NCBI GenBank assembly: GCA_004431415.1
Contig: QPMI01000640.1
Span: 124,001 to 188,000, forward strand
Length of the DNA: 64,000 nt
Direction of reading: 5' to 3'
DNA from: Cyanophora paradoxa CCMP329
Taxonomy: Eukaryota; Plantae; Glaucophyta
This document shows, piece by piece, positions 23,601 to 64,000 of the stretch. Each line of letters begins with the position of its first letter. Position 1 is the first letter of the stretch. Both the position numbers and the translations under genes were made by a program. The notes beneath the pieces were generated by a model, which saw only the letters and a program-made list of their open reading frames with translations, was not told the origin of the DNA and did no database searches.

Positions 23601-26600
23601 ATGGACACATCCGGGAGCTACGAGAACTCGCTGGAGCTGTCCTCGTCCGCCGGCAGCATGAACTTCGGCCGCAACGAGGCGGCGTTCGCCTTCGGCGGGC
23701 AGATACCGCGTGCGGTGCAGAAGAAGCTCCAGCAGCAGCAACAACAACAACAGCAGCAGCAGCAGGGCGCCGGGCGCGGCAGCTACGGCGCTCCAATTTC
23801 AAAATCCGCGCCCGCCCCTGCCGGCCGCGGGGTCCCTCCGGCGGCCGGCGCGCGCGATCCTTACGCAGCTATCAACCTCTCGGGTCCCGCATCATCATCC
23901 GCCGCGAAGCCGAGGGAGCCCTACGCCGGCATCCAGCTCGGCGGTCCGAGCGCAGCAGCGGCGAAGGACCCCTATGCCAGCATACCGCTCGGGGGCGCTA
24001 GCGGCGTCGCGAAGAAGGATCCTTACGCGGGCATCCCCCTGAGCGCGGGCCCCGGTCCCTCGGGAGGCGGGGGCGGGGGCGGCGTGCTGGGGTTCGGCGG
24101 CGGCCGCGGCGGCGCGGGCGCCAAGGACCCGTACGCGGCGGTGAGCTTGGACCCGTACGCGGCGGTTGATCTCAGCCGCGCGTCCTCCGCGCCGGGGGCG
24201 GCCAAGAAGGACCCCTACGGAGGCATCCAGCTCGGCGGCGGCGGCGCTGGCGGAGGCGGCGGCGGCCAGCGGCGCGGGAGCGCGACTTTCGACGCGGACA
24301 GCGATTTCGACTTGGAGGAGTTCGAGAAGCCGCAGAACAAGGGCCGGCGGACTGCCCCGGCGGGGGCCGCGACCGCCGCCTCCGCCTCCGCCTCCTTCGC
24401 GCGCGCCTCCAGCGCCCCCGCCAAGCAGGCCCCGCCCTCCGACCCCTACGCCGCCATACCCCTCGACTTCGGCGGCGGCGCCAAGGCCGGCGCGAAGGAG
24501 AAGCGCAGGGGTTCGGCCTCGGGCGGGGACGCTTTCGACCCCTTCGCGCCCCGCCCGGGTATCGCCGTCTTCGACCCGAACGCCGACCCCGACTTCGATG
24601 AGCTGTACGCCCCCCCGAAGCCCAAGCCCGCCCCCTCCCCCGTCCCGGCTCCGTCCCCCGCCCCCGCCCCCGCCCCCTCTCCGGAGCCGCGCCCGGGCAT
24701 GTCGGGCCGCAAGGACGCTGCCCCCGGCCCCGCATCCGCCGCCGGCTCCTCCTCGGCTTCGAAGGGCGGCGGCCAGTCTCTCTGGAGCGCCCCCGGGGCC
24801 CAGTCCTCCCTCGCCCCCGCCCGCTCCGCCCCTTCCTCTTCCCTCAAGGCGAGCGCCCCCCCCTTCCCCCCCTTCCCCCTCGCCTGCTGATACACGGGCA
24901 GGGGGGCGCGAAGGATGCCTACTCCTTCGAGATCGACCTCAAGCCTGCGTCGTCCTCCTCCAAGGCCCGCCGCGGGCCCCGCGCCCCCGCAACCCCCTCC
25001 CCGCACCTCCTCTCATCCCCCTCTTGCCCCGCCGCAGGCCCCGCCAGCATCAACCAAGCCGAAGGATCCGTACGCCTTCGACCTCGACCTCTCCTCCGTA
25101 CCCTCCTCCAAGCCCGTGAGCCCTCTGCCCCCTTCCAGCTCGCCTTTCTGAGAGCCTCTCCCGGCTAATCGCGTGCCCCAGGCCGGCCCGAAGGACCCCT
25201 ATGCCTTCGACATCGATCTCAACCTCCCCTCCTCGAAGTCCCAGGCCCGCGCCCCTATCGACCCGCGTACCCTGGGGTCTCCTGTTGACGCGGTACCCCT
25301 GCAGCCCGCAGCAGGCAAAGTGAAGGACCCGTACGCGTTCGACGTCGACGTGCCTGCCGCAGGCTCCAAACCCGTGCGCATGCACCCCCTAGCCTTCCTG
25401 TACCCCCATCCCTCTGAGCCGGGGCAGGGATCGGCGAGAGGGTCGGACTTGGACGGGGAGAGCCGGCCGCGCACGGGCCCGCAGGCGCAGGCGGAGTCGC
25501 GCCGCGGGTCCATAGCCGACTCGCTGGCGGCGGCGGCGCAGGGGGGGCGGCCCCTCTCCGCAATGGAGCGAGCGGAGATGGCGCTGAGGAGCGGCCGGGG
25601 CGGCGGCAAGGCGGCCCCGGCGGCGCCGCCGGCGGCGCGCAGGTCGACATTCGAGGATTCGGACAGCAGCGAGGTGTTCGACTCGGATGGGGAGCTGGTC
25701 GTGGGGCCCAGGAAGCCCAAGGCGAGGCCGCCCGCTGCCCCCGCCGGCCCCGCCCCTGTTCGCCACCTGCCCCCTCTGCCCCCGCCCCCTCGCCCCCTGC
25801 CGCCTCCCTCGACTCGGCGTGTGCAGGGCGCGAGGGACCCGTACGCCGCGATAGACCTCGACATGGACTTCGGAAAGGCCGCCGGCAAGCCCGCCCCGGA
25901 AAAGGGCCCCGGCGAGAAGAACCGGCGGGGCAGCATCGCCTCCGACGCCTCCCTGGTGCAAGCCAGCGCCGCGCAAGGAAACAAACGCGGAAACGAGATC
26001 CCCCCGCGCAGGAGTCTGTCCCCTCGTCGGCCTTCTCGGACTCGCCGCGGCGCAAGTCGCCCCGGCGGGGGGCCGGCGCTGGGGCGGGCGCAGGCGCGGG
26101 CAAGCCGCAGCAGCGGCGGCCGCTCAGCGACGAGGAGGAGGACCTCGAGGTGCGGCGGGCGCGCTGGGGCGCGGGGCGACCGCTTCCGGCCGGCCGGCCT
26201 CTCTGAGGCCCGCGGCAGGCCAGCGGCGGCCTCGGCGAGTCCGACGAGCTCGCCAAGAGGTGCGCCCCAGCGACCCGCCCCGCCGGGGCGCGCGTGGTGG
26301 GGGTGTGGTGGAGGTGAGGGGGCCGGCTCGGGGCGCAGCGACGCGCTGGCGAACGCGATCCGGACGCTGGACTCGGCCATCGCCGAGCGCGCCCCCGTCC
26401 CCGCCCCCAAGAGGTCCCCCGCCCCTCCCCGCCCCGGAGAGCCCCCCCTCCCAACACCCGCATTCGGAAGCCCCGCGCCGCCTGACGCCCTAAGCCCCTC
26501 CCTTTCGCCGCAGCTCTTCCTTCAAAGCCTCCGCACCCGCTCCAGCCCCGGCCCCGGCCCCGCCGGCGCACCAGCCCATCATCGCCGCCAAGCTCGGGAT

Positions 26601-29004
26601 CCAGGTTCGAGTCCAGCCGGAGCCCCATTATGCGAGCGCCGGGGTGAGCCTGGGGTACAGGTGCGGACCATCGCGGACCTTCTCGCGGAGGACCCGACCC
26701 CGATGCCCTTGGCCTCTGCCGGGGTACGGGAACCTCACTCGCGCGGCCTCGATTTCGTTTCGTTTCGTTGAATTCGGCTCTGCGGCCCCGCAGAGCGAGA
26801 CGAGCAGCGGGGTGCCCACCCCGCGCCGCAGCTCCGACGGCGGCGAGATCTCCTCGGTGAGCGTACCCCCTCTTCCTCCTCCCACCACGACTGAGGGGTC
26901 CCGTCCATTCTCCAGCCCGAGCCCGTGCCCGTCGTGAGGGCTTCAGTCACGGGGCAGCGCGTCTTCTCTGCGGCCGACCTGATGGTTCGTGAGGCGCCGT
27001 ACCCCCCGGATCCCGCAGAAACCGAGCTCAATCCCGTACCCCCCAGCGCCAGTCCGTTTCCGCTTCGGAAGTCTCGGCCTCGCAGGAGCTCGCAAACTCG
27101 GCCTCCAGCATCCCAGAGGTTCCTCTCTCCCTTCTTGTCTTTGTACCCCCCAGCGATGTGACCGCGTACCCACAGATCGCGGACTCGATCGGGTCGCCCC
27201 TGGGGCGCAGCGGGCGCCGCGTGTTTGACTCGATCGAGGAGGTCCCGGTTCGGATCATCCCGTCATAAACCACTCCACGCTCACCCCGCGGGGCCGCCAG
27301 GAGGAGGAGGAGGAAGAGGACGGGGGAGGGGTCGACGAGAGTGCCGGCGAGGTGCGTGCGAGGCGGGCACCCCTCGGCGGGACACGTGCAGAGCGTCGCC
27401 GGCGGCCATCCCGCACTGCCACCGAGGCCTCGCCGCTCGCACAGATCCCGGACGAGGACGAGGAAGAGGAGGAGCGGGGTGGGGCGGGGCACGACGCCTC
27501 CGTCGTCGGCACCGAGCCCGTGCGCCCGCCCCCGGCCCCGCCCCTATTCCCCCTCTTGCCTGCTCCTCCCCTCCCTCTCTGCCTCCTCTCCACAGAGATC
27601 GCCCTGCTAGAGATCCATCCTTTCCCAAACGACCCGTGTCCCTCCCTACGATGGAGAACGCTCGCCAGCCGCTCGACTTCGGGGCGGGGCCGCGCTGAGG
27701 CGGGCGGGGGTGCGCAGGTGAGCGACGGGGAGGAGGGGGAGGGCGGGGGTGGCCCCCGCGCCGACCGCGACGACGCCGGCACCGTGCGCCCCCCCGCCGC
27801 GACCCGTCCCGCCAGAAACCTTCCCGAACGCAACACTCCACGTCCATCTCTAGAGGGAGGGGGGGGAGAAGGGGGGGTAGGGGAATGGGTGTGGGGGAGG
27901 AGAGGGGGGGGGTGCTTCTAGGGGGTCTAGGGGAAGGGTGCGGGGCGGTGTGGAGGGGCGTGGGGGCGGGGCGTGCGGGGCTGGTCGAGCGGCTCCGGCA
28001 GGAGTACACGGAGGACTTCGAGGCCCTCTCCGTCGCCGACACCAGCGCCCTCCTCAGCCCCAAGGCCCCGCCCCACACCCCCCGGCCCCTCCCTCTCCTC
28101 CCTCCCGCTCAAGACGGGCGCAGGGCCAGCGCACGCCCTCCGCCCTCCGAACCGGCGTGCGGGTGCGCCGGGGCCCTACGAGCGCAAGCGAACGGCGCGC
28201 CTCTTTTAAGCAGGCGTGTACCCCCGCAGGAATCGGCGGGGTCGCTGCGGGAGTCGGTCGGGGAGCGGCGCCGGAGCGTTGCGTTCCGCGAGACGCCGTC
28301 GCGCCGCGGTCCGCCGGGCGCATTCGGAGCGCCTCCCCGGGGGCTGAGGCCGGCGCGTGCCCCCCGCAGGCCACACGCACGACGCGGAGGTGCAGGCGGG
28401 CGGCCCCCTGCGGCCCCTCGTCGGCAACTGGACCTCCGCCCTTCCCTTCGACTACACGCGTACCCCCTCCCCCTACCCCCGCGCCCGCACGCGGCTGAGC
28501 GCGGGAGGGGCAGTGCCGGAGGTCCCCGCCGAAGATGTGTTCGAGGTGCGTGCGGCGGGGCTGGCGGGGCGATCGGGCCGAGCTCAGTCGGCTCCGCTCA
28601 GGTCAACCAGTGGGCCACGATGGAGTTCTTCAAGCGGCAGCTCGACCTCCTCTGCATTCGGGTACGAGAGTCCCGCCCCGTCGCTCTCCCCGCCCCTCCC
28701 ACACCCGACCCGCGCGCTCCCCAGATCAAGACGGACGCGTTTGCGGCCGACCTGCACGCCGGCGCCCTCGCGGGGAGCGGCTGGGGGTACTACGGCGGGG
28801 GTTACCGCTACACGACCCTCGAGGAGACGAAGCAGGCGCGCCCGCGTACCCCCCTCCCGGCGCCACCGCGGGCCACGCGAGGGCGCAAGGAACCGGGGGT
28901 GCGTGGCGCAGTACATCGCGGCGAACCGGCCGAAGGCGGTCTCCTTCGAGGAGGCCCTCGAGGCCGTCAAGCGGGAGGAGGCCCTCGGCATTCGCATCTC
29001 CTAG
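23601..29004 (+). CDS. Large disordered protein with polyQ, DPY-motif repeats and a C-terminal DUF4614 (C19orf44-like) domain
   Basis: Long first exon with DPYA repeats. The C-terminus MEFFKRQL..GYRYTTLEETKQ-YIAANRPKAVSFEEALEAVKREE resembles the C19orf44 C-terminal motif as I recall it. Confidence 0.7.
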
Positions 29005-29903: not shown

Positions 29904-32900
29904 ATGCGTTCGGCGACCGAGGCTCTTGAGCCTCCAGCCGCTCGCGCATGCGCAATCGTGCGCGAACGAGCGCATCCCTTGGCCTTGAGCTCGGTCGGGG
30001 CGCCGGCGAGGCCGCGGCCGGTGTCTGCGTCAGTTGCATGCGCAGCCGCGGAGCGCCGGCCAGGACAATTCCGGTGGCAGCAGCCGCAGTGCCGAGGTCG
30101 GCGCCTCTGTTCGCTCCCGCAGCTTCGGTTGCAGCTGCGGCTGGTCGCGCTGGTGGCGCTGGCGCTCTGGGGCGGCAGCGCGCCGGCGGCGCTGGGGCAG
30201 GCGGCGGCGCCCTCGTGCTCGAAGCCCCTGTGCAGGACCGGCGTGGGCCCGGCCTCCCGCTGGTCTCCCCCCGGTGCGCCTCCTTGCCTCGCCTCTTCGC
30301 GCGGCGCCCCTCACAGCCCCTATCTGATCCTGGTATCGGCGCAGCGAGCACTTTCCGGCGCGTCTCCGCGGCGTCTCCCCCCTCGGCTCCGCTTCCGCCG
30401 CTCACGGTGCGCGGACCCCGCGTACACGGACACGGCCGAGGCGCGCGGCTCGCTGATCACGAGTCGCGGCGGCGGCGGCGGCGGCGGCGGCAGAACGCGA
30501 GCCGCCTGCTGCAGACGGGCGTGGCGTACGCGGGGAGCGCCGTCACCTCGGCCTTCATCGCCGGCTGGATGCAGTTCCTCGCCCTCGTGAGCCCCTTCGG
30601 CGCCTTCCTTAAAAGCTTGGGCCCTCCTAAGCTGAAGCTACCTTTCAGCCAAGTAGTAAATCTAACGTTTAAGCTAATTATAAAGATGAATTCATTAGTA
30701 CGCTTCAATGTAGCCGTAGCTAAACCAGGAAAGCTGAAGCTGAACGGGCCAGGACATCGCGGAGTGGGCGACGAACGCGACGGACGACCCGCTGGTGTAC
30801 GCCTACGAGGCGTGCGACGCGGCGGGCCGCTGCTCGCTGCGCAACGGGAGCATCCCCGCGCCGCTGACCGCGGGCGGGGCGCTCGTGAATGGCGCGACGA
30901 ACCGCATCGACGGGGGGCCCGTCTACGGGGCCACCCCCGCGCGAGCGGCCGCCGTGCGGGCCTTCTCCGGCGGTTCGCCCCGCCTGCTTCTCCCCGCGTT
31001 CCTCTCCGACGCTCCCCCCGCAGGCCTTCTCAAGGAGGAGGGCTCGGCGGGGCCCCCGCCCAACGAGCTGGGCCTCCCGATGGGGGGCCCCCCCGAGCGC
31101 GCCCGCCGGCAGCGCCTGACCGGGAGCCCCGAGGGCAACGCCAGCCCCGCCCTCCTCGGCGTCATCAGGTGAGGCTGGAGGGCAGCCTGTGAACAGCCAT
31201 CCTGCGCTCTAGCGATCGCACGCGCTCGAGCTGCGCCCTCGAGCCTGCCCCTCGAGCGGCGGCCGGGGCGGCGCGCTGGGTGCCGCCTGACGCGGGGGCG
31301 GGGGCAGCACGCTGGTGCGGGAGCACAACCGGGTGGCGCGGGCGCTGCTGGCGGAGAACCCGGCGTGGGACGACGAGGCGCTCTTCCAGGAGGCGCGCGT
31401 CCGCGTCGTCGCCGTCATCCAGGTGCCCCGCACCGCCCCGCGCGCTCGAGGGCCCGCCCTCCGTGCCGGCGCCTGCTCGACAGCGCGCGTGACGCCGGCT
31501 GCTGCGGCGGGGCGCGCGCGGCGCAGCGGGTGACGGTGCTGGAGGTCCTCCCCGTCGTCCTCGGTGCGCCCCCTCGAAGCATCCACGGCAGGCCGCCGCC
31601 GCCCCGCCGGCATCCGAAGCCGCCGCGTCCCGCAGGGGCCCCGCTGACGACGTACAAGTACAACGCCTCCGGCGAGGCCCGCGTCCCGCTCGAGGTGCCC
31701 GCGCTCCGCGCCTCGAGGTTGAAGGGTAGGGGGCCCCCGCCCCGCCTAGAAGACCCGCCTCGTGCATGCGCAACGCGTCGCCCCCTCAGCGTCCGCCACT
31801 CACCCTGGGGTCTGAATCCTCATCTCAGTTCGCGGCGGCCGCGGCGCTCGTGCACCGGACGCTCCTCCCGCGCGTGCGCCCCGGCCCCCGGGCGCCAGCT
31901 GGCAACCGCGCAGCTCTCAGAGGCCTCGATGGGGGCAATCTGAGCGCCGCTCGGCCCCTCGCAGGCGTACGCGCGCGTGGACGCGAGCGGCGCCGTCGCC
32001 GCCGAGGGGCCCCTCTCCGCGTACGACGCGTACTACACCGCCGCCTTCCTCGAGGTGCCCCTACCCCCCCTCTTCGCTCCTCCGCGGGGCCCTCTGAGGG
32101 GCGGGGCGGGGCGCAGGGGAGCGCGGAGGGGATGCCGGGGCTCGTCCGCGGGCTCGCCTCGACGTACTCCTCCAGGGCCGACCTCCACTACGCCGACTTG
32201 TGCGCCTTCAACTCTACGATTCTGTAGTGGTTCCATAGGACCACTTGCCCCGCCCCTGACCGGGAGGGGCGCAGCCTGCGGGCGGGGCTGTGGCCGCTGC
32301 CGGACGCGGGGACGGAGGACTTGGCGCGGGGGCGGCTCGCGGGCCTGCCGCGCTACGGGCAGGCGCGGGCGGGCTTCGGGCTGCCCGTCCCCTCCTCGTG
32401 GGACAAGGTCGCCTCGGGGGCCGCCCTCCTGGAGGCCCTCCAGGTGCCCGCGCCCGAGCCCCCCGCCCGCCCCTCCCCATCCCCGGCTCAGCGGCCCCGC
32501 GCGGGGGGGCCGCAGGCGGCGTACCCCTCCCCGGCCGACGCCGACCTCCTCGTCGGCCTCCTCGCCGAGAAGGTCCGCCCGAGGCCCTCGAGCTCTTCTA
32601 GAGCACGCGCCTCTCTAAGATCTGGCTTTGAGACACGAAGCTGCTAGAGCTGCAGCTCGTCTCTGATCATGAGGGCGGGGCGCGCAGGAGCAGGCGGGGG
32701 GCGTGGTGGGCCCCCTCGCCGCCGCGATCATCCTCGAAACCATCAAGACCGTCCGCGACACCGACCCCTACTGGTCCCCCCAAGCCCCACCCGCCTTCCT
32801 CTCGTACCCCCCTTGCCTCAGCCGGCGGCGGCGCGCGCGCAGGTTCGACACGCTGGCGGCGCCGGTGCAGAACGAGGTGCGGGCGCGGCGCTTCACGGAC

Positions 32901-35900
32901 ACGGTCGAGTCGGCCTGGGCGCCCTTCATCAAGAGCCTCCCCCGCTCCGTGCGCGACCGATCGCTCTCCGCCGCGCGACGCCCGCTGCGCATGCTCCGGC
33001 GCGAGGCCAGCGCTGTGGCCGACGGGCGGGCAGGTCTTCATCGCGACGCCGCCGCCGTGGCAGCAGAACGACTTCTCGCAGGACCTCTCCGCCCTCGCCA
33101 ACGCCACTTCGCCCGCCCCGGGCAACGCGACGTCGCCGGCGTCGAACGCGACGGCCTCCGCGTCGGCGACGAACGCGACGGCGGCCTCGCACGTGTACGC
33201 GGCGTCGGCCCGCCTGAACGACGTCCTCAGCATCCGCTGGTCCATGCTCGTCGCGACCCGCGAGATCGAGGTCGCCGTGACCTGCGCCTGCGACGGCTGG
33301 GTCGGCATGGGCTTCGGCTCCTCCATGGCGGACGCCGACGTCGTCTGGATGCGCCACAACGCCTCGGGCTCGCCCCTCGCCGTCGACGCCAAGGCCATCG
33401 GCTTCCGCGGCCCCGCCACCGGTGCCTCGCCCCGACGCTCGCGGCCGCGCTTCGGGTGCAGCTGACCCGGCCGCGCGGGGCGCAGACGGGCGGCAGGACG
33501 TGACGCTGGTGGAGGCCTCGCGCTCGCCGGGCACGCAGACCTTCCGCTGGAGGCGCGCCTGGAGCACGGGCGACGCGGCGCAGGACAAGCCCATCGAGCC
33601 CGGCCGCCAGCGTGAGCGCCGCTGATTCGCGATCTATTCGCGGCTTCGCCCCCTCGGCCTGATCCTCCTCCGAAATGTGCAGCTCTCATCTTCGCGTGGC
33701 GGGCGAGCGGGACGGAGGTGCGATCTTTCGTTTGATACGCTCTATCGCATTGAATCAATCGTGGACACGTCGCCGAGAGAATGCTAAGGGCGATCCCGCA
33801 GTTTTCCATCCACCGCCCCATGGACGTCCTGCGCGGCTCCATCGATTTCTTCGCGGCGGCGGGCCTCAGCGCCGCCGTGGCCTACGGGACTGGCACCTCC
33901 AGCTCCGCATCCTCAGATCCCGGCGCGGGGGCGATCGCGACCCCAGCGGACCCGGGCTCGAGCTTCACTGTCTCCGAGGGCCGCGACTACGGCAACGCCT
34001 ACACCGGTGCGAGAGGCAGTCGCCCGCGCGTTCGGCGAGCCCTAGGCCTGACGCCGGTCGGATTCGCGATCGCGATCGCGGGGCAGTGCACGCGGTGGCG
34101 ATGGCGATCACGTGGGCGGTGATCGTCCCTGCGAGCATCTTCATCGTGCGGCACCTCAAGCACATCCCAATCTGGCTCAACCTCCACCGCGGGTTCGTCG
34201 AATCTGCCGCGCACCCTTGAGCTGCAGCTTGAGCTTGCCTCGAACCAAACGTCGACGCGCTCGAATTATTGACACCGAGCGTCACAGGATGATGCAGCTG
34301 GCGCTGACCATCACCGTTCCCGCCGCCTCTGCCGCGTTTGCCTCCCGGGCGACAGGCGCCGAGGCGAAATCTCACGGGTGCCGCCCCTTTGGAAACGCTC
34401 TATTGCGCGCGCTGGATCGTTGAAGCACGCGGCGGGCAGGCTGCTGGGTCTGGCGCTCGCCATCGATTCCGCCCTGCAGCTCGCGTTGGGCATGCTCGTC
34501 AAGTGCGCCGTTCATTGCGCAGCGTTGTTGAATTACACGGCGTTTAATCTGCCCGGCTCCTTGGCGCGTGCGCGCAGGCACTTCCACATGTCGCGCAAGC
34601 CGCAGCGCTGGGCGCACGCCGTCCGCACCCTCCACCGCGCCAACGGATGGCTAGTCTGCCTCGGGGCCCTCGCGAACGTGGGCCTGGGGCAGCAGCTGAT
34701 GATGCCCGTCGCCCGGAACGCCTTCATCCTCTGGCTCGCCGTCCTCGTCACCGTCTTCGCGCTCGGCGAGGCGATCTCCTTCTACAACTGGCGCCGCGTC
34801 GAGGTCATCTTCGACTCGATCAACGTCAAGAAGGTCGCGGTGCGCCAGGCCGGCGCAGAACCCAACAGAATGTCGCTGAACACGCAACGCGGATCCGGAT
34901 GGACAGCACATCACGCCGTCAGAGTTCGAGCGGGCGATCCGCCTCGGGTCTCAGTGGGTGCTGGTCGGGGACCGGTGCGCCCGCAACGTTCCTCGACGCG
35001 CCCCCGCGTGTCTAACGCGACGCGCTCCCGCGCGGGGGCGGGCAGCGTCTTTGACCTCGCCCCGATCATGTCCTCGCACCCCGGAGGTGCCCCTCGCACT
35101 CCGGCCCGCTCGCCTCTGGAGCTCGAGCGCCCGTCCGACGGGCGCCCCTCGGCCTTGCAATTGCGCAGGGACGGCGCTCCTGCACTCGGTCATCGGGCAG
35201 GACGTGAGCGCCTTCCTCTACGGCAGCGGCGGGCGCATGGCGTTCGGGGGCTACCGGGCGCACCACCACAGCGTCTTCGCCCACCGCATGCTCCAGGACG
35301 TCCGCCCCACCCTTCACCCGTGCAGCGCGCCCCCTCCGGCTTCGTCTGAAGGATGCGGGGCAGCTGTGCGTGGCGGTGCTGCACCCCGAGGGGGACAGGG
35401 ACGACGAGGCGGCGGTGGCGGAGGTGCAGACGTGGACGGTCGTGGAGCGGACCGTCGTCTGCCCCAGCAACCGGCCCATCTACCGCGTCCGCTTCGCCTG
35501 CGACGTGACCCCCTTCTACCAGTGCGCCCTCGGGGTCGTCGAGGGGGCCGTCGGCTCATGCTCTTCCCAGGGACGACCTCCGCTACCTGGGGCAGCACTT
35601 CGAGGTCACGGCGAACATCAACGGGCGCGACGTGCACCGCCACTACTCCCTTGTCCGCATCGCGCACGCCGGCGGGGCGCGGGCGGCGCCGACGCGGGCG
35701 CGGCGCTACTCGGTGGATCCCGACGGGGAGCTGGACTACAGCGCGACGCACGACCTGTGGCTGCGGCGCTACCCGACGGGCGCCATGTCGCGCTACCTGC
35801 TCGACGCCCCCATGGGCTCCTCCATCCGGTGCCCGCCCCGGCGCCGCCCCGCCCGCGCCCCCCCGAGAGAGGCCGCCAGCGAGCGCGCCCCTCCGAACTC

Positions 35901-37686
35901 GCAGCGTGCGGGGGCCCCTGGGGCTCGGCCTCCGCCTGGGGCACGACACGGAGGGCGACCTCGTCGCGGTGCGCCCCGCCCCGGCCGGCGCCCCTGCAGC
36001 GAGGCGGGGGGGCGAGGCGGGGCGGCTGACTGCGGCCTCGTGCAGGTGGTGGCGGGGACGGGGATCCTGCCCCTCCTCGACCTCGTCGCCCACATCCGCA
36101 GGACCGAGGACGAGCACGCCGCCCAGGTCCCCCCGCCCCGACCCCCACCCCTCCCCTCCATACCCCCGCTGCCCCGCCCCATGACGCGCTTGGGGGCGGC
36201 GGGGCAGCTGGCGAGCCCGGTGCTGGGGCCGCGGCAGGGCCCGGAGCCGGCGGCCCTGCGCCTCCCCGCGACGGAGGTCTCGGACACCGACCGCGAGGCG
36301 GCCGCCCGGGCGCGCGCCCGCCTCCGCCGCTGAACGCGGCGCCGGCGTACGAGCCGCTGGGGCCGGGGCCGCCGCCGGGCGCCTCGGGGTCCGAGGGGGA
36401 CGCCGAGCGCCGGGGCTCCCTCCGCAGCGGCGGACAGCGGGCGATCAGCTTCGGGGCGAGCGCGTCGCGGAGCTTCAAGGGGAGCGCGAGCAGCAAGAGC
36501 TTCCGCAAGAGCTTCAAGAGCCGCCTGGAGCCCTCGGGGAGCCTCCTCGGCCGCACCGCCCTCGTCGTACCCGTGGAGGGCGCCCCCGGCCCCTCCCCCT
36601 CCCGCCCCTCATCCCCCCCTACACGCACGCCACGCCGCCTCCGCCCGTCCCCGCATCCATGGTGCGCAGTCTTCTAGCCGCTTGAGCGCAAGCCTCGCTG
36701 GAGCGCCCGGCTCCTTCCCCCTCCCCCTGACGCCTCGGGGGGGGGCGTGGCAGTCGTCGGGGATGGGGATCGGGAGCTTCCTCAACATCAGCATGCCCCT
36801 CCTCTCCCCCTCCCTCAGGGGCCCCGACTTCCAGCTGCCCCTGCCCCGCGACGGCTCCCCCATGCACCAGGAGCTGCGGGGCGGGAGCTTCACGGGGCGC
36901 CCGCAGTCCTCGGGCGCCCTCGGCGGCCCCGGCAGCGCCACCGTCCGCCGCCGCCGGGGCCCCCGCTCCGCCGCCGCCCGCGGCCTCGCCGCCCCAAGGG
37001 CCCCACCGCCCGCCCAACATGCGCCTCCGCCTCAAGGTCCCCCCCCCCCCCCCACCCCCCACCCACCCCACCCCACCCCGGGTGTGACGGGGGCGGCAGC
37101 TGGTGGGGTGCTTCGAGAGGGCGGAGGACATCCCCGAGCTGCCGTGGCTCGAGGAGTGCGCCGCCGCCTGCCCCGCCCTCGACCTCTTCCTCTTCGTCGC
37201 CAAGCCCCCTCCCAGGCCCGCCCCCGCCCGCCCCCGCCCCGCCCCCCTGCCCCCCGCTTCCCGCCTCTTCCCGCACCGCCGGCTCCACGTCACTAGGCGC
37301 TTCCGTCGACTCCAGCGTTACTGGCCCCGCCGCCCCAAGACGTCGGCTGTGCTGCGTGCGGGGCGAGCTGAGCGGGGCGGGTGGGGCGCAGGCGTGGCTC
37401 TCGCAGGGGCCGGGGCGGCGCTCGGGGCGGGTGGACGCCGCCTTCCTCCGCGACGCCGTCCTCGCCAAGGCCAAGGCCCTCCGCGCGCCGCGCCCCGCCC
37501 CCCCGCCCCCCGCCCAGAGCCAGAGCCCCGCACCGGGGCCCGCCCCTCTAGATTCTCTGCCGGCTGCTGGAGGTGACGTGGCGCGCAGGCTTCTTCTACA
37601 TCTGCGGGCCCCCGGTCTTCGCGCACACCATCCGCGCCGCCGCCACCGAGATCGGCGTCGAGCCCAGCGCCCTCGTCTCCCTCTGA
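29904..37686 (+). CDS. Multidomain membrane oxidoreductase: haem peroxidase-like + DOMON + cytochrome b561 + cytochrome b5 + FAD-binding + NAD(P)H-binding
   Basis: Signal-like [12 protein letters not shown]. Peroxidase: [54 protein letters not shown]: [15 protein letters not shown]. b561 with four His: AVHAV, LHRG, SHG, LHRA. b5: HPGG and HHS. FAD: RHYS, GAMSRYL, VRGP. NAD: [13 protein letters not shown]. Start codon uncertain. Confidence 0.85.
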
Positions 37687-38386
37687 CCCCCATCCACCTC
37701 CGCCCCGCCCCGCCCCGCCCCGCCCCGCCGCCGCCCCTTTCACCGGCTCATTGAGTCGCACACGGCCCGTAGCTTTCGCCGTCCGACGGTCGTTTTAGGG
37801 CTCCGAGGGTCGAGCCTCGGAGATCGAGTTGCCTGTGTGCTTCTATCCGCCGTCGTGAGAGGTCGTCCTGTACATTAATATATATTAGGCACTTGGGCTT
37901 GTTCGGATTCCTTAGCAATAGATTTGATTTCTGCACGTGGCAGTCGGCTGTTCACTTCTGCTTTTCATAGCATTAAGAGCCGCCTCCCTCTTTCATTGCA
38001 AACCTTGATCTTAAGCGCATCTTTGCTAACTTAGTTAGCCTGGCATTGTACGCGCATTGCTTTGAATCTCGTATTCCACGGTGTTCTCTTCAGCCCCGCA
38101 ACTTAGTAAATTGAGGCCGCAAGTCCCTTGTTTTGTATAGATGCGTTACGTGCTCATATTCGAGTATAGCGACCAGATACAGTTATATATATATGATCAG
38201 AAGGCCTTCTTTATTTAATTTCGCCTCAAATGTTTTCATGATCAGCTTCAATTTCCTCGATTCTTCCCTTTCACTGCTCTGATGAGCCTCGGAGCGCGTT
38301 AACTCGATCTCTGCGGGGGCGGCAATCGAAATACGTGCCCGTGGTTCTATCTGCGTGTCAGAGTCCCTTCCAGATCTCTATTCTTC

Positions 38387-38430: not shown

Positions 38431-39041
38431 GTGGTATTCTTCCCGGGTCCATCGATATCATGGTCATCATGGCATGACGTCGACATCGCACAGTGACATA
38501 ACGTTCTCGCTGCCAGGAGACTTCCGGCTTGAAATGCATATGTGGCCCGTACTAGTGGGGAGTCGTTGAGGACGTTGAGGACCGTCGGACGTCGACGTCG
38601 GCCGGCCGGGTCGCCCCGCGGCCGCGGCCCGACGGCATGCGCATGCTTCAAAAAATTTACAGTTTCACGAAATCGAATTCGAACTGAGACCCGTCTACAT
38701 CGAGCGGGGGTCGGGCCGCCGCCGCGCCGGCCCGCCGCGAGTCGCCGCGCTAGAGCCCTATAGCTAGCTAGTCCTAAGCATTATCACCCCCCCCCCCCCC
38801 CCCCCCTCCCCCCTCCTCCCGGCAGCAGGGCCGCGGCCTAGGCCTGCAGTTTTGCTTTGATTGAACTCGGAATACGTAATGCGAAGGCAGATACTGGCCG
38901 TGGAAAGCTTCGAGCAGCTCCGAGGCTCAAGAGCTCTCTGGGTGACACACTGACACGAGACGCCGAGCGGCCCAAGCGGCCGGGTACAGGGCCAGCCGCA
39001 GTTAACATCTGAGCGAGGCAGGGCGCGCGCGGGGCGCTGCG

Positions 39042-41154
39042 CTATATAACGTAGTCGCCGATATAGTCGTCGAGGGTCTGGTCCATCCCCTGCGCCCCGC
39101 CCCGTGTCGGGCCCGGGCCGGGGCGGGGCGCGGGAGGGGGCCGGGGGAGGTGGGAGGCGCCCGTCCCCCCGGGCACCTTGGCGGGCTCCATGTCCTTGTT
39201 GCGGCCAAGAACGCGCGCCGGCACCCCCACCTGGCCGCCCAGCACTCAGGCCCCCGCCCCGTGCCGCCGGCGCCGCAGAGTGGCCGCCCCGCGCGCACCG
39301 CCGTCACGTGAGGGGGTATGCTCTTCAGCACCAACGACCCCGCCCCGATCTTGGACCCGTCCCCGATCTGCACGGGGGGTACGGGATTCAGAGCCGGGGG
39401 CAAGGCGGTTGCTGGTGCTCGACGCACCGTGATGTTGCCCAGGACAGTGACGTTCGCGGCCAGCAGTACCCCGTTCCCGATCTGTACCCAGCTAAGCGAT
39501 CCGATTCGGATCAAAAGGGGTACGGGCGCTCAGCACCTTCGGGTGCCGGTCGCCCGTTTCCTTGCCGGTACCCCCAAGCGTGACGCCGTGCAGGACTGGG
39601 GACGCAAAGGAATCAGGGGGCGCAAAGGGCCTGGAGGGGTGGCGCGGAGTACAGGCGCACTAGAGACATCGTCACCGATGACCGCCGTCTCTGCGCGTAC
39701 CCTTTTCAGCCGATTCCTGAGGGGTACTCCAAAATGCGAGCAGCGGGAAAGCGCAGCGAACCGCCGATCACAACGCCCGTCGCGTGGTCGAGCTGAGTAG
39801 GGCAGATGGTGAGGGGTACTGAAGAAAAAGGGGGGGGGGGAGAGGGAGGAGGGAGGGGAAGGGGAAGACGCACGAGGATCCCCTTCCCAACGCGCGCAGC
39901 GGGGTGAATGTCCACGTGGAAGCAGTCGCTGATCCGGGACTGGCGCCCGGGCACGCTTTAGAGGGGAGGGGGGGGTGGGGGGTGGGGGGGAGGGGGACGC
40001 GGCGGTCCCCGGGGTACAGGACGCGAGCGCGCACCTGGAGGGCGAGCGCGAGGGGGATACGCTCGCGCTGCCACAGCGCGTGCGCCACGCGGTGCGCCTG
40101 CACGGCCTGGGGTACGGCATCGGCGCCGGGAGCACAGGGACGGGGCGTGGGAGGAGGGGAGCACCTGGAAGCCCTTGAAGTACAGGAGGGCCTGGCTGTA
40201 CCCTCGGCACGCCGGATCCCGTGCCTTGACGGCCTGTGGCGGTGCAGAGCTCGGAGGGGGCGCGGACAGCGCCCGCGAGGGGGGTACGCGCGCACGCGGA
40301 GGTCGGCGCGGTACGCGTCCTGGATGCCGGGGTCGCTCCTGATGACCTGCTTGAAGAGCTGCGGGGGGTGTCGCAGAGGGACGAGGTCGGCAGGCGGGTA
40401 CGGCGGCGCCGCGCGGGGCGGGGCGGGCACCTCCATGAGCTGCGTGGCGAGGAGGGTGGGGGAAGCCAGCTTGTTGGCGAGGTGAAAGGCCTGCGCGCGG
40501 CGCAAGGCGGCCCTCAGCGGCGCGCTCAATTCGAAGCGACGCGCTCCGAAGCGGGCCGCACGAGGGAGTCGTCGAGAGAGCCTGCGGCGCGGCGGGCGGG
40601 CGGGCGGGCGCTCAGCGGCGCCCCAGCGACGCGCTCTCAGTGGCGCCGGGCCTTGAGGGGGGCGGGGCGCACTGTGGGCGAGGATGACGGAGTAGAGGAA
40701 CGAGGCAAGCGCCGGCTCCTGCTGCGTGTCCGCCTTCGCCTCCGCCCGGATCTCCTCCCACAGCTCCCCCTGCCGGGCCCCGCGCGTGCGTTCAGACGGC
40801 TCCAGCACGAGCGAGCGGCGCGGGGGCATGTACGTCGTCCAGGCTCTCCGGCGGCCGCGCGGAGCTGGTGATGGCCGGTCGCTCTGGCGCCGCCGGCGCG
40901 CCGGACGCGGCGCCGGCGAGACGGCCAGAGCGGAGCGGCAGGACTGCCGCGCGGCCGCAGAACCTCCTAGCGGATGCAGAGAGCCGCAAATGGGCCGCCT
41001 CGCCCGCGCCGCATCCCAGAGCGCCGCGAGCGCCACGAACAGAGCGCCGGATGGCGCTCCGGCGCGTGCCTGGGGCCGCGCATGCGGTCTTAGCTTCGGT
41101 CCATGGCCAACGACTCGGCTGGCCGCTGACTAGCACCGGCGCGGCGAACAGCAT
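39042..41154 (-). CDS. cysE: Serine O-acetyltransferase, probably plastid-targeted
   Basis: ELWEEIRAEA..EPALASFLYSVIL, LLYFKGFQA, HRVAHALW, VDIHPAARVGKG, LDHATGVVIGETA, VTLGGTGKETGDRHPK, KIGAGSLVL. N-terminus MLFAAPV is transit-peptide-like. Confidence 0.93.
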
Positions 41155-60104: not shown

Positions 60105-60886
60105 CTAACGATGCTCAGGCTCTAACTGAATGCTGTACCCCCCGCTGTTACTGCCCGAACCTTCCGAACTTGCGTAATTCGGCCTCGCCCTGTACCCAGT
60201 GGCTGGTGTCGTCCATCCATTCGCGTACCTCCCTCTGACGCTTGAGTGACTCACGCTGCTCGGGGGTAGGGGAGGGGGGCCTTCGAGGCGGGGTGGGGAA
60301 GGGGGTACGGTGGCAAAATTCAGCCACTCGGGGGGTATGCCGAATTCGCCGTGAACGATCCTCTGCGGTGTGAAATACCGGTCGCTGCTCACGGCCAAGT
60401 GGAAGAACGCGCTCCTGAGCCCGGAGAGGAAGCGTGGTTGCATGAATGGCTGCTGGAGGGACTCGTCGCGCCAGGGGGCTACGAAATCAATGATACGCTG
60501 CTGTACCTGCGCGGGCAGGGCAAGGATCTGGCTCTTGCGGTTCGCAAAGGCCGTCCACAGCGCTTGCAGGTCGGCCCAATCGCCGTTCAGATCCCTGCGT
60601 TCGCGCCTCAGGTACGATCTCGGGTTCTCTGTCATACCCATCAAGCCCGCGGCCCTGATCATCTCCCTGTCCGGGAGCTCTCGCTCGTCGTGGAATTCGT
60701 CTCTAATCCAGCGCACAAGGTAGAGCACGCGCTCCATGAAGTTCTCCGCCGGCGAGCCGCCCCTGAGGACGTGCGCCTCCCCTCCAGCACTGCGTTCGCA
60801 TCCTCCAAGTCCACGTTCCGCTGTCGAATCTCCCCGTCCAGGTCGCCGTTGTTGTACAGCACGTCGGACTCGCGTGTTCGCGCCAT
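60105..60886 (-). CDS. Hypothetical protein, paralogue 2 (one frameshift at ~60780)
   Basis: MARTRESDVLYNNG..AVLE / EAHVLRGGSPAENFMERVLYLVRWI...GRYANGWTTPATGY; the frameshift lies in a G run. Confidence 0.5.
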
Positions 60887-60906
60887 GCTCGCGGCTCGGT
60901 GAGAAT

Positions 60907-61611
60907 TTATACCTGTACCCCTACTCGCGGTCGGGGTACCTGTCGCCGGGCATCAGCCTCGCGCGCTTCCGCATCTCCGCCTCCCGGGTAGCCAGTTCTT
61001 CGGGTCGTTGCTCCACTCCTCCCATTCGCGTATGTCCCGTCTGACGTCACGCGGGGCGGGGCGTTTATCGGTGGGGCGGGCGGGGCTGGCAGGGCCTGGC
61101 GCGGGGGTTGAGGCCCCTGTTCCACGAGTACTCGGGTACTCTTCCCATCCCAGGGGTACCAGATTCATCGGAATTGGCTCAACTTCGAATTGGGGCTTTT
61201 TGACGTGATAATCATAGTTTGTGACATACGCCGTCACAGCCGAGCGCAAGCGCGAGAGTCGCGCAAATTTACGTCGTCCATTGCGAGTCCCTTGCCTTCG
61301 CGTACCACTCGAGGATTTGCATGCGAATGTGGTCCGGGAGGGTCGAGAGTATGCTGAGCTTGGAGCCCAGGGCGAACCAGATGCGCTTGAACTCGTCGAT
61401 AATCCTGCCCTCGTCGTGGCTCCGAACGTAAAGGGCCCCGCCAGAGTTGTAATGCGTGTCTAGCCACCCTGCCGGGCCAGCTCTAGCACCGGCCAGGGTT
61501 GGCGCTGTCGATTCGGTCGCGAGGCCTGCTCTACCACCAGCGTCTAAGGTCCTTGACCTGATCTATGAACTGTGCGATCACGTCCCTGGGCGCTTCCTCT
61601 GCATCCGACAT
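60907..61611 (-). pseudogene. Hypothetical protein, paralogue 1 (several frameshifts; decay or assembly error)
   Basis: Fragments MSDAEEAPRDVIAQFIDQVKDLRRW / EFKRIWFALGSKLSILSTLPDHIRMQILEW / RLSRLRSAV..VPLGWEEY / GTYANGRSGATTRRTGY align by eye with the neighbouring ORF. Confidence 0.5.
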
Positions 61612-61661
61612 TTGCAATTGCACACATCAAGAAATTCTAAACGCTACTGCGAGGCTACGCT

Positions 61662-62316
61662 ATGCATACCGATACAAATTGCGAGACTTTGCAACAGGGG
61701 AGCGCAGCGTGGCACGCGGCGCGCCGTGAAAAACTAACTGCATCTAATTTTGCGGCTGCGTGCGGCATAAACCCCTGGAAATCCAGGCCCGCCTGTGGCG
61801 GAGCTAAGCGGGATAGCGGAGGAAAACAACTTTGACAACCCTGCCCTAACCTATGGGCATGACTATGAGCCCCTCGCGGTCTCTCTCTACAAAACGTCGA
61901 ACAACAACGTGGACGTGCAACATACTGGATTGCACGAACATAAGGAACTGCCCTTCCTGGCGGGCAGCCCGGACGGGCTGATTGGAAGCGATCGTATACT
62001 TGAAATAAAATGCCCCTACAAACAAGAACTCTACGAAAAGGTCCCAACTTATTACATGCCCCAGCTCCAGGGCCTGCTGGACATAACGGGCCGCGACTGG
62101 GCCGAACTTTTCTGTTTCACGCCTCTGCGCGTGCAAACGTGGTACGTCAGACGGGACGAGAGGTACATCAAGCTCATGAGGAAGTGCTTACATCTATTTT
62201 GGATGCACGTCAAGGAGGGCACGCCGCCCGAGCCCTACAGCGATCGAATGAAGTCAGAGAACCTCAGCGAGGAGCAGGCGGCGCTGCGCGAGTTTAAGTC
62301 GTACGCCCTCCTCTAG
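61662..62316 (+). CDS. YqaJ-like viral recombinase / lambda-exonuclease family nuclease (frameshift at ~61790)
   Basis: N-terminal QGSAAWHAARREKLTASNFAAACG in one frame; YGHDYEP, PFLAGSPDGL, ILEIKCP and YYMPQLQGLL in the next frame. Confidence 0.88.
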
Positions 62317-62655
62317 TGTCCCGACCCTCTCAGATATTAATTTAAAGATCTGGGAGGGTCGGGACACGTCTCTTGGTCAGACTACTTATGTACGCCCTCC
62401 TCTAGTGTCTCGACCCTCTCAGATATTAATTTAAAGATCTGGGAGGGTCGGGACACGTCTCTTGGTCAGACTACTTATGTACGCCCTCCTCTAGTGTCTC
62501 GACCCTCTCAGATATTAATTTAAAGATCTGGGAGGGTCGGGACACGTCTCTTGGTCAGACTACTTATGTACGCCCTCCCTCCTCTAGTGTCCGGACCTTT
62601 CCAATAATCTATAAAGAAAGTAGGGAGGGTCCGGACACGTCTCTTGGTCGGACTC
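62302..62655. repeat. 89-bp tandem array (3 near-identical units plus 1 diverged), each with a 20-bp inverted repeat around an AT-rich loop
   Basis: Units start at 62302, 62391, 62480 and 62569. Arms GTGTCCCGACCCTCTCAGAT (62316-62335) and ATCTGGGAGGGTCGGGACAC (62348-62367). A related inverted copy lies at ~62932-62982. Confidence 0.93.
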
Positions 62656-63027
62656 ACCGTAGCTTGGTGTAGCTCAGGCCCAGGCGGGGAAGGCGAGTCT
62701 GCAATGAATCAGACCCCACAGGATTTGGTTGAGCTGCTCTTTGCAGGGGGCAGGAAGGCGGCCGCAGAGGGCTAGGGAGACTAGATCTAATTAGTAATCC
62801 CACACCGCGCATGTGCAAGCGACAGAGAACGAAGTGAGTAAATGCAGATCGATGATACGGCAATCATGAGTTGTTCAGAAAAGGTCGGGACACATAGAGA
62901 GTGCATGCCCTCACTCTCGTCCGCCCTCGCAATGTCCCGACCCTCCAGATCTTTAAATTAATATCTCAAAAGGTCGAGACATTCATTGATCATATGCATG
63001 ACGTCACTTGAATTCGCACGTTCGTAT

Positions 63028-64000
63028 TTACACACTGGCACGCGCATCCCGTTCGCGAAGTCCACACTGTGACATCCGACAATCACACGCGCCTGTGAAT
63101 GAGAGCATAGCAGTCGGAGAAAACGTTGTAAACCTCTGGAAGCTTGGCGCCATGCCTGCCCTTGCCTGCTTAGCCTGGCGCTCTACTGCGTCGTCGAGCA
63201 TGTCTTCCTCCCACGTGATGTAGCGTCGCTTTCGGCTGCCCATTTGCCCTCCGTCCGCGTCGGAGAAAGCGCGTCTCACTCCGAGGTACTTCTCCAGCAG
63301 GTACTTGATGACTTGCCAAGACTGCTGCGAGAGCCGCTTCTTCTCACCGTCCGCTGCATCGAAGCGGGGCGCGCGCTCGTCCAGACTCTGCAGAGCCGCG
63401 TACGCCTCCCGACCCTCCGGCGACGCCAGGGCCGCGTAGGCTTCGTCCGACCACAGAGCACGCCCCGCGAGCTTTCCATACCCCCGCCAGCCGAAGAGTT
63501 TCTTGAACAGCGCGACGACCTTCGATACCTTGAGGCGCTCAGCAGTAGGCACGATCTCGGCAACGTCCGCGCCATGCTTCAGCACCAGCGTGACCACGGC
63601 AGTGAGCGGGATGGAGTAGAACGAATCCCACATCCAGGCGACGTCTCCTTCGGTCAGCTCGCTCGGATCCTTGGCCAGGAACGCGGCGATCGACGTGCGA
63701 GCAAGCGAAGCAACCTTCTCGATGTCCAGCTTAGCGAGAGACTCGCGGGACTGCCTCCAGGCCAGCACCGTGCTCCACAGATCGACGGGCTCCAGCGCGC
63801 CCGCCTCCAGCACGCTCCTGATCTCGCGCAGCCGCTGCTCCTTCTCCTGCTTCGGTCCGCTCGGGTTTTGATCCTCCGTGACTTGCACGTTCATCAGCGC
63901 GCAGGTCGACATCAGCCGCAGGCGCGCTGCCACTGCGAGGCGCCGAGTGGGCATGCCGGCGCGGCGGCTCCCGCGGTGGCTAGCCTTCAGGTCCAGGTAG
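63028..64000 (-). CDS. Intronless hypothetical protein, probably the C-terminal part of a larger gene of the element
   Basis: Open frame of ~300 aa with protein-like composition (..WMWDSFYSIPL..VIKYLLEKYLGVRR..GSRKRRYITWE). No confident family assignment. Confidence 0.55.
   Translation of the reverse strand, partial: YLDLKASHRGSRRAGMPTRRLAVAARLRLMSTCALMNVQVTEDQNPSGPKQEKEQRLREIRSVLEAGALEPVDLWSTVLAWRQSRESLAKLDIEKVASLARTSIAAFLAKDPSELTEGDVAWMWDSFYSIPLTAVVTLVLKHGADVAEIVPTAERLKVSKVVALFKKLFGWRGYGKLAGRALWSDEAYAALASPEGREAYAALQSLDERAPRFDAADGEKKRLSQQSWQVIKYLLEKYLGVRRAFSDADGGQMGSRKRRYITWEEDMLDDAVERQAKQARAGMAPSFQRFTTFSPTAMLSFTGACDCRMSQCGLRERDARASV

Follow-up and report, generated by a model that had tools for sequence, protein, structure and literature searches.

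The window analysed here (64,000 nt of Cyanophora paradoxa CCMP329, contig QPMI01000640.1, positions 124,001 to 188,000) carries at 29904-37686 of its plus strand a gene whose product joins a signal peptide, a peroxidase-type ectodomain, a DOMON domain, a cytochrome b561, a cytochrome b5, and FAD- and NAD(P)H-binding reductase domains. The protein is probably an NAD(P)H-fed reductase of the CYBDOM type (DOMON and b561), which would work independently of ascorbate and reduce acceptors on the outside. The whole reading is based on sequence, with cofactor binding and the order of the electron carriers deduced by homology. The initial annotation had described the gene as an electron wire in one chain with the same domain order, and this order was recovered by Pfam searches exon by exon and by motifs. 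The motifs it named lie where it had placed them on the plus strand, and a check of the sequence locates the stop codon at 37684-37686. The features are as follows.

29904..37686, plus strand: whole gene of 35 exons, product of about 1,600 aa; the EukProt model of the locus covers the b561-b5-FAD part only
30123..30197, plus strand: signal-peptide core and cleavage region, upstream of Gln-Ala-Ala-Ala-Pro-Ser-Cys, with the same layout in the paralogue P0003
30198..33075, plus strand: An_peroxidase (peroxidase-cyclooxygenase-type) ectodomain, exons 1-16, recognized by Pfam, alignments, and paralogue motifs
33076..33190, plus strand: Ala/Ser/Thr/Asn-rich linker, to which most of exon 16's five N-glycosylation sequons belong
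33191..33855, plus strand: DOMON, with Met (SSMADAD) at 33325 and His at 33811 as predicted haem ligands; Pfam profile positions 3-58 and 78-115 matched over two exons
33856..34006, plus strand: Ser/Gly/Ala-rich linker, length differing among the paralogues
34087..34790, plus strand: cytochrome b561, five predicted membrane helices, with His at 34089, 34185, 34373, and 34633 on four different helices
34907..35380, plus strand: cytochrome b5, axial His in HPGG (35077) and HS (35267)
35420..35968, plus strand: FAD-binding domain of b5-reductase/FNR type, RHYS at 35638 and GAMS at 35779; FAD_binding_6 matched in one exon
36046..36126, plus strand: beginning of the NAD(P)H-binding domain (first strand and helix), GTGILP at 36055
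36208..37010, plus strand: Pro/Ser/Gly/Arg-rich insertion of about 250 aa within the NAD(P)H-binding domain, containing most of the one-base slips
37010..37686, plus strand: remainder of the NAD(P)H-binding domain and stop codon, CGPP at 37603; identity to P0005 of 59-90% in the single exons

When the phase was checked exon by exon, 31 exons from the ATG at 29904 to position 36316 were in phase and free of stops. All 30 introns in this stretch are of the form GT..CAG and 49-166 nt long, and the G+C content at third codon positions (GC3) of its exons is 0.79-1.00. Four further exons follow after 36316 and end at the stop codon. At 34579-34839 lies an exon identical (100%) to EukProt EP00741 tig00021493_g21899.t1 (P0001), the model of this same locus, which has 584 aa, covers the b561-b5-FAD part, and ends at a frame slip (36333). 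The best matches of nearly all exons are colinear on two paralogous proteins, tig00000718_g3689 (P0003) and tig00000523_g1831 (P0005). The spliced model was searched exon by exon, and the stored P0001, P0003, and P0005 served as proxies in tests of whole domains. The start codon is uncertain: the ATG at 29904 lies about 75 codons upstream of the hydrophobic core, and starting from the ATG at 30038 and removing a 49-nt intron leads to a normal signal peptide. Either start yields one and the same mature protein. A candidate exon at 30416-30440, which required a non-canonical acceptor, was dropped once the exon at 30345-30406 had been matched to P0003.

Spliced contigs from four runs (at most three samples, two studies; RNA origin guessed) were compared over the range 31701-37700, from exon 9 onward, and where introns had been predicted in b561 and b5, their joints are GT-AG. 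Record 13 of X3 starts in DOMON at 33234, skips introns amounting to the expected 160 nt, and by its length extends to about 34636 in b561. Record 3 of X1, with 1513 nt against 1512 exonic nt of 33920-36310, joins the DOMON-b561 linker, b561, b5, the FAD domain, and GTGILP. Record 2 of X1 and record 6 of X2 have 241 and 274 nt, respectively, 5' of exon 16 and by length would reach 32524 and 32419, both in the peroxidase domain. The fusion of peroxidase and DOMON occurs also in two database models, those of the paralogues. A single gene encoding one polypeptide chain, as first proposed, is very likely because the contigs overlap, the phase is open through 31 exons, and two database models share the fusion.

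From FAD to DOMON, the ligands and motifs are intact. P0001 matched Cyt-b5 with E 2.5e-8 and positions 1-130 of 137 of Cytochrom_B561 with E 3.7e-4; the four b561 His are spaced by 32, 31, and 41 residues. The RxYS, GxMS, GTG, and CG motifs of b5 reductases and FNR are all present, and NADH-cytochrome b5 reductase (7ROM) is the best PDB match of the flavin part, with E 1.4e-7. In the paralogue, the NAD(P)H domain weakly matches the FNR family (flavohaemoglobin, NqrF, and BenC) in its C-terminal half. Three copies agree without change in the DOMON Met and His, the b561 His quartet, HPGG, and the flavin motifs; this locus and P0003 also have the second b5 His. The ligands described in the initial annotation are found here and kept in the paralogues, save for the second b5 His in the model of P0005.

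In the CYBDOM arrangement of b561, His1 and His3 hold the outer haem and His2 and His4 the inner one, and the core consists of helices 1-4 with loops in the order in-out-in (PMC10691727); the predicted topology here agrees with it. Five long helices appear in the b561 region of the P0001 AlphaFold model, whose overall confidence is low. Loop 1-2 has 3 Lys/Arg, loop 3-4 has 6, and the stretch following helix 5 has 4, compared with 1, 2, and 1 on the outside. Ten N-glycosylation sequons lie upstream of the membrane domain and one downstream. Helix count, basic loops, and the distribution of sequons argue strongly for b5 and the reductase being in the cytosol, with DOMON on the opposite side. Placement of b5 and the reductase on the side of DOMON, which the initial annotation had set beforehand as fatal to its proposal, is not what the helices, the Lys/Arg bias, or the sequons indicate.

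The ectodomain matched An_peroxidase in order over four exons (profile positions 145-175, 230-266, 392-429, and 462-487). In the Dictyostelium peroxidase DdPoxA, the distal residues are Gln97, His101, and Arg233, Glu236 forms an ester, and the proximal residues are His325, Asn403, and Arg406 (PMC5787809). P0003 was aligned to 6ERC and 8S6C, and positions were transferred to this locus via identical motifs. The distal Gln (30572), a Ca-site Asp (30753), and the proximal Arg406 (32327) are retained. In the alignment, Arg233 is replaced by Glu (31131), and likewise Glu236 by Ala (31140) and Asn403 by Asp (32318). W-M-Q-F-L-A-L-D is the distal motif here and has Leu (30584) at the presumed position of His101, placed by the family motif W-x-Q-x-x-x-H-D rather than by a tool alignment. 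P0003 has the same catalytic losses, but Ser instead of Ala at Glu236. The domain seems to be a pseudo-peroxidase, and peroxidase catalysis is unlikely because the distal His and Arg are lost both here and in P0003. The last step of the earlier proposal, the passage of electrons into a working peroxidase domain, is not supported in view of these substitutions. As the peroxidase-homology domain of DUOX1 is free of haem and off the described electron path (PMC7794343), and the catalytic residues are lost here, the cap is probably not the end of the wire. Alignment scores were 74.6 bits with bacterial and 57.1 bits with Dictyostelium peroxidases, versus 37.5 bits with DUOX1; judged by scores rather than by a tree, this is indicative of a cap fused independently of DUOX.

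In the preferred scheme, cytosolic NAD(P)H would reduce FAD in the b5-reductase module, and FAD would pass single electrons to the b5 haem, by analogy with the diaphorase part of nitrate reductase. The b5 would stand in for ascorbate in reducing the inner b561 haem (His2/His4), and the outer one (His1/His3) would feed the Met/His haem of DOMON. This would deliver electrons to a one-electron acceptor outside, most likely chelates of Fe3+ or Cu2+, or quinones, presumably at the plasma membrane. The peroxidase-fold domain would be a disabled, glycosylated cap serving as a scaffold or for dimerization or docking of partners, as may be the case in DUOX1. Known CYBDOMs reduce ferric and cupric chelates with electrons that pass from cytosolic ascorbate over three haems (PMC10784544). 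In Cyanophora, ascorbate is undetectable and MDHAR, DHAR, and APX are absent (PMC4396506); a fused b5 and b5 reductase would replace the donor. The cytosolic loops are basic and match the ascorbate site of HYP1 inexactly. Of the roles first suggested, metal reduction is favoured by the analogy with CYBDOMs, while ROS (reactive oxygen species) output is the weaker option on account of haem potentials.

Several points weigh against this scheme. The Cytochrom_B561 score is slightly below the curated Pfam cut-off, and the database model of P0005 lacks the second b5 His, possibly through a model error. The whole gene is spanned by no single contig, the runs are presumed to be RNA, and the link of peroxidase to DOMON depends on how long the contigs are, on a GT-AG intron in phase, and on the two database models, with no contig piece listed across it. 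Two AlphaFold models are poor (predicted local distance difference test, pLDDT, 39 and 48), and three fold searches with such models were uninformative, the b561 fold not being confirmed in that way.

A functional convergence on DUOX is unlikely. The protein would then release superoxide or H2O2 outside, directly or via cycling of iron or quinones, for signalling, defence, or cross-linking of the surface by partner peroxidases held by the cap. The layout does resemble that of DUOX, including the disabled peroxidase cap (PMC7794343): a non-catalytic peroxidase-homology ectodomain, a two-haem membrane domain, and a cytosolic FNR-type FAD/NAD(P)H domain follow each other in one chain. The convergence in layout put forward in the initial annotation thus stands, with different parts, and the basic Ser-rich insertion in the NAD(P)H domain could act as a regulatory switch. 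The membrane domain, however, is b561 and not the ferric reductase domain (FRD) of NOX, so the oxygen-reducing centre of NOX is missing; DOMON and b5 are additional, and the FNR fold is of the b5-reductase type (FAD_binding_6). Cytochrom_B561 but no Ferric_reduct was matched in Pfam searches, and there was no EF-hand match in P0001-P0003. The six-helix FRD of DUOX and NOX, with His pairs 13-14 residues apart in helices 3 and 5, was not found. By its sequence, with neither FRD nor EF-hands, the protein lies outside the DUOX/NOX family. Haems reducible by ascorbate are normally far more positive than NOX haems, so direct superoxide output appears less likely, and the b5, b561, and DOMON haems would usually be too positive for one-electron reduction of O2. 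The haems of NOX have potentials of -225 and -265 mV against -160 mV for O2/superoxide (PMC8228183), and the haems of b561 and DOMON are reducible by ascorbate (PMC10784544, PMC10784552). Indirect formation of ROS via reduced iron or quinones is possible.

Delivery of electrons to lumenal enzymes of an internal compartment (endoplasmic reticulum, alveolar vesicles, or vacuole) instead of the cell surface is quite unlikely. The signal peptide and sequons place the N-terminal half in the secretory lumen and nothing more specific, and single-domain b561s work in vesicles and vacuoles (PMC10784552 and works cited in PMC11066809). However, the five-helix CYBDOMs of plants are plasma-membrane proteins (PMC10784544), and no retention signal was seen in the protein. 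An internal location is compatible with the chemistry of the NAD(P)H-fed reductase.

Equally doubtful is an independently invented DUOX, that is, a b561-based surface oxidase powered by NAD(P)H, whose cap would hold haem in a remodelled pocket and aid ROS or cross-linking chemistry. If true, it would be a second eukaryotic route to regulated extracellular oxidants without NOX parts. The complete wire of the initial annotation, with haem kept in the peroxidase fold by a proximal His-Asp-Arg set as the terminal redox centre behind a remodelled, non-peroxidase distal pocket, is very doubtful. His 31853 lies at or beside the proximal position: it aligns with His336 of MPO, where Phe stands at -8 and Pro at +5, and this copy and P0003 have in common the proximal Arg, the distal Gln, and Asp for Asn. 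It is, however, one residue off in the DdPoxA/8S6C register, by which the protein has Arg at the His position; both ester residues are lost, as are the Arg and Gly directly preceding the proximal His, and in this copy, about 40 aa of glycosylated linker lie between the domain and DOMON.

Past 36316, the frame of the window, read from GC3, is discontinuous, with shifts at C-runs at 36316, at two sites near 36950-37010, and at 37209; further shifts are probably present near 36570-36660 and 37500-37540. In three runs, the spliced contigs have one C more at 36316; the same is seen at 37008 in two runs and at the splice junction at 37209 in one, and the slips therefore look like assembly errors. 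One-base deletions of C in the assembly are the simplest reading, with a strain difference as the alternative. An extra C of the contigs at 35846 is intronic and was disregarded. Two or more adjacent genes, or a decaying one, misread as one would accord with these breaks and with a EukProt model of just 584 aa, but such a misreading is extremely unlikely, given contigs that overlap the DOMON, b561, b5, and FAD junctions and supply the missing bases at three breaks, the fusion in the paralogue models, and GC3 near 1 throughout. The one-base deletions (36208-37540) cut the public model g21899 short at 36333, and similar errors probably fragment other GC-rich genes of the C. paradoxa genome. The intron at 37216-37391 is GC-AG and 176 nt long and is backed by one contig joint, while the 30 upstream introns are GT-AG. 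A basic Ser-rich stretch at 36400-36540 in the insertion, partly conserved in the paralogue g1831, is possibly a phosphorylation or regulatory site.

Among known systems, the CYBDOMs (Arabidopsis HYP1/CRR, animal SDR2/FRRS1, and Drosophila CG8399) share the signal peptide, the outer DOMON with Met and His, and b561 with four His on four helices; HYP1 likewise has five helices (PMC10784544). With its DOMON Met/His and four-His b561 core, the protein is structurally a CYBDOM as far as its sequence tells. The described CYBDOMs are fed by ascorbate and have neither a b5 nor a flavin module, whereas the Cyanophora protein has both, and animal members carry a reeler domain in place of its pseudo-peroxidase. 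By these predicted parts, its own NAD(P)H module and the pseudo-peroxidase, it is new relative to described CYBDOMs. The DOMON-FRE ferric reductases of Naegleria and oomycetes resemble it in an outer DOMON that ends a trans-membrane chain fed by NAD(P)H, but they have an FRD with directly docked FAD and lack b5, b561, and the peroxidase fold (PMC3591440). The diaphorase part of nitrate reductase and cytochrome b5 reductase likewise have b5 and, after it, the FAD- and NAD(P)H-binding domains. In nitrate reductase, the partner of b5 is a molybdenum centre, whereas here it would be a membrane b561; the Cyanophora protein differs from both enzymes also in the long insertion of its NAD(P)H domain and in lacking a C-terminal aromatic residue. 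Fusions of DOMON to FAD/NAD-binding oxidoreductases are mentioned in general terms (PMC10784552). A ciliate-rich cluster of the ESM Atlas (54 members, 995 aa; Cyt-b5 85%, DOMON 50%, FAD_binding_6 41%, and no peroxidase family listed) probably shares the core of DOMON, membrane domain, b5, and reductase, although with a score of 0.78, it is a lead only. This cluster may fit the idea of an ascorbate bypass; Paramecium lacks both terminal ascorbate enzymes (PMC4396506).

At least three copies of the gene (this locus, g1831, and g3689) are present in the C. paradoxa genome, with 48-80% identity in shared parts. From the models of P0005 (g1831), the latter half of b5 and the initial two-thirds of the peroxidase domain are missing, by either model error or real decay. 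A phmmer search with the b561 exon over 1.84 billion representatives recognized Cyanophora copies only, a fourth match being a repeat artefact, and three word-index searches of low sensitivity gave Cyanophora copies only among the matches listed. Scans of metagenome, viral, and prokaryote contigs revealed no relative in another species, and one match was of low complexity; the sensitivity of these searches is limited, and an empty result is here no proof of absence. No description of the architecture or of a fusion of b561, b5, and reductase was found in the literature searched, of which Iyer et al. 2007 and the Asard 2013 review were not a part, and to this extent, the architecture is uncharacterised, as first suggested. 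So far, the full architecture is found in one species. Eukaryotic b561s are described as fed by ascorbate, and the export of electrons from NAD(P)H is ascribed to the FRD/NOX family. The Cyanophora protein crosses both designs, as its b561 is wired to its own b5 and b5 reductase. If active, it would represent a third, self-contained design of trans-membrane electron export, with a predicted one FAD and four haems per chain, and would offer a simple system for how b561s work without ascorbate. The disabled peroxidase cap would have been recruited repeatedly, here and in DUOX, which bears on its role.

The neighbouring genes look unrelated. On the plus strand at 24000-29003, a long gene of low complexity, in which DPY(A) motifs recur, ends 900 bp upstream. 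On the minus strand, at about 39035-40790, an intron-rich gene reads as a serine O-acetyltransferase with an N-terminal extension, with the motif HGVTLGGTGKE recognized by eye; one short exon of it was searched against Pfam and gave no match. The region 60105-64000 is intronless, lower in GC, and virus-like, with further open reading frames (ORFs) besides a YqaJ-like ORF at 61795-62316 (Pfam E 8.6e-14). An 89-bp tandem array of 3.9 copies lies at 62301-62654.

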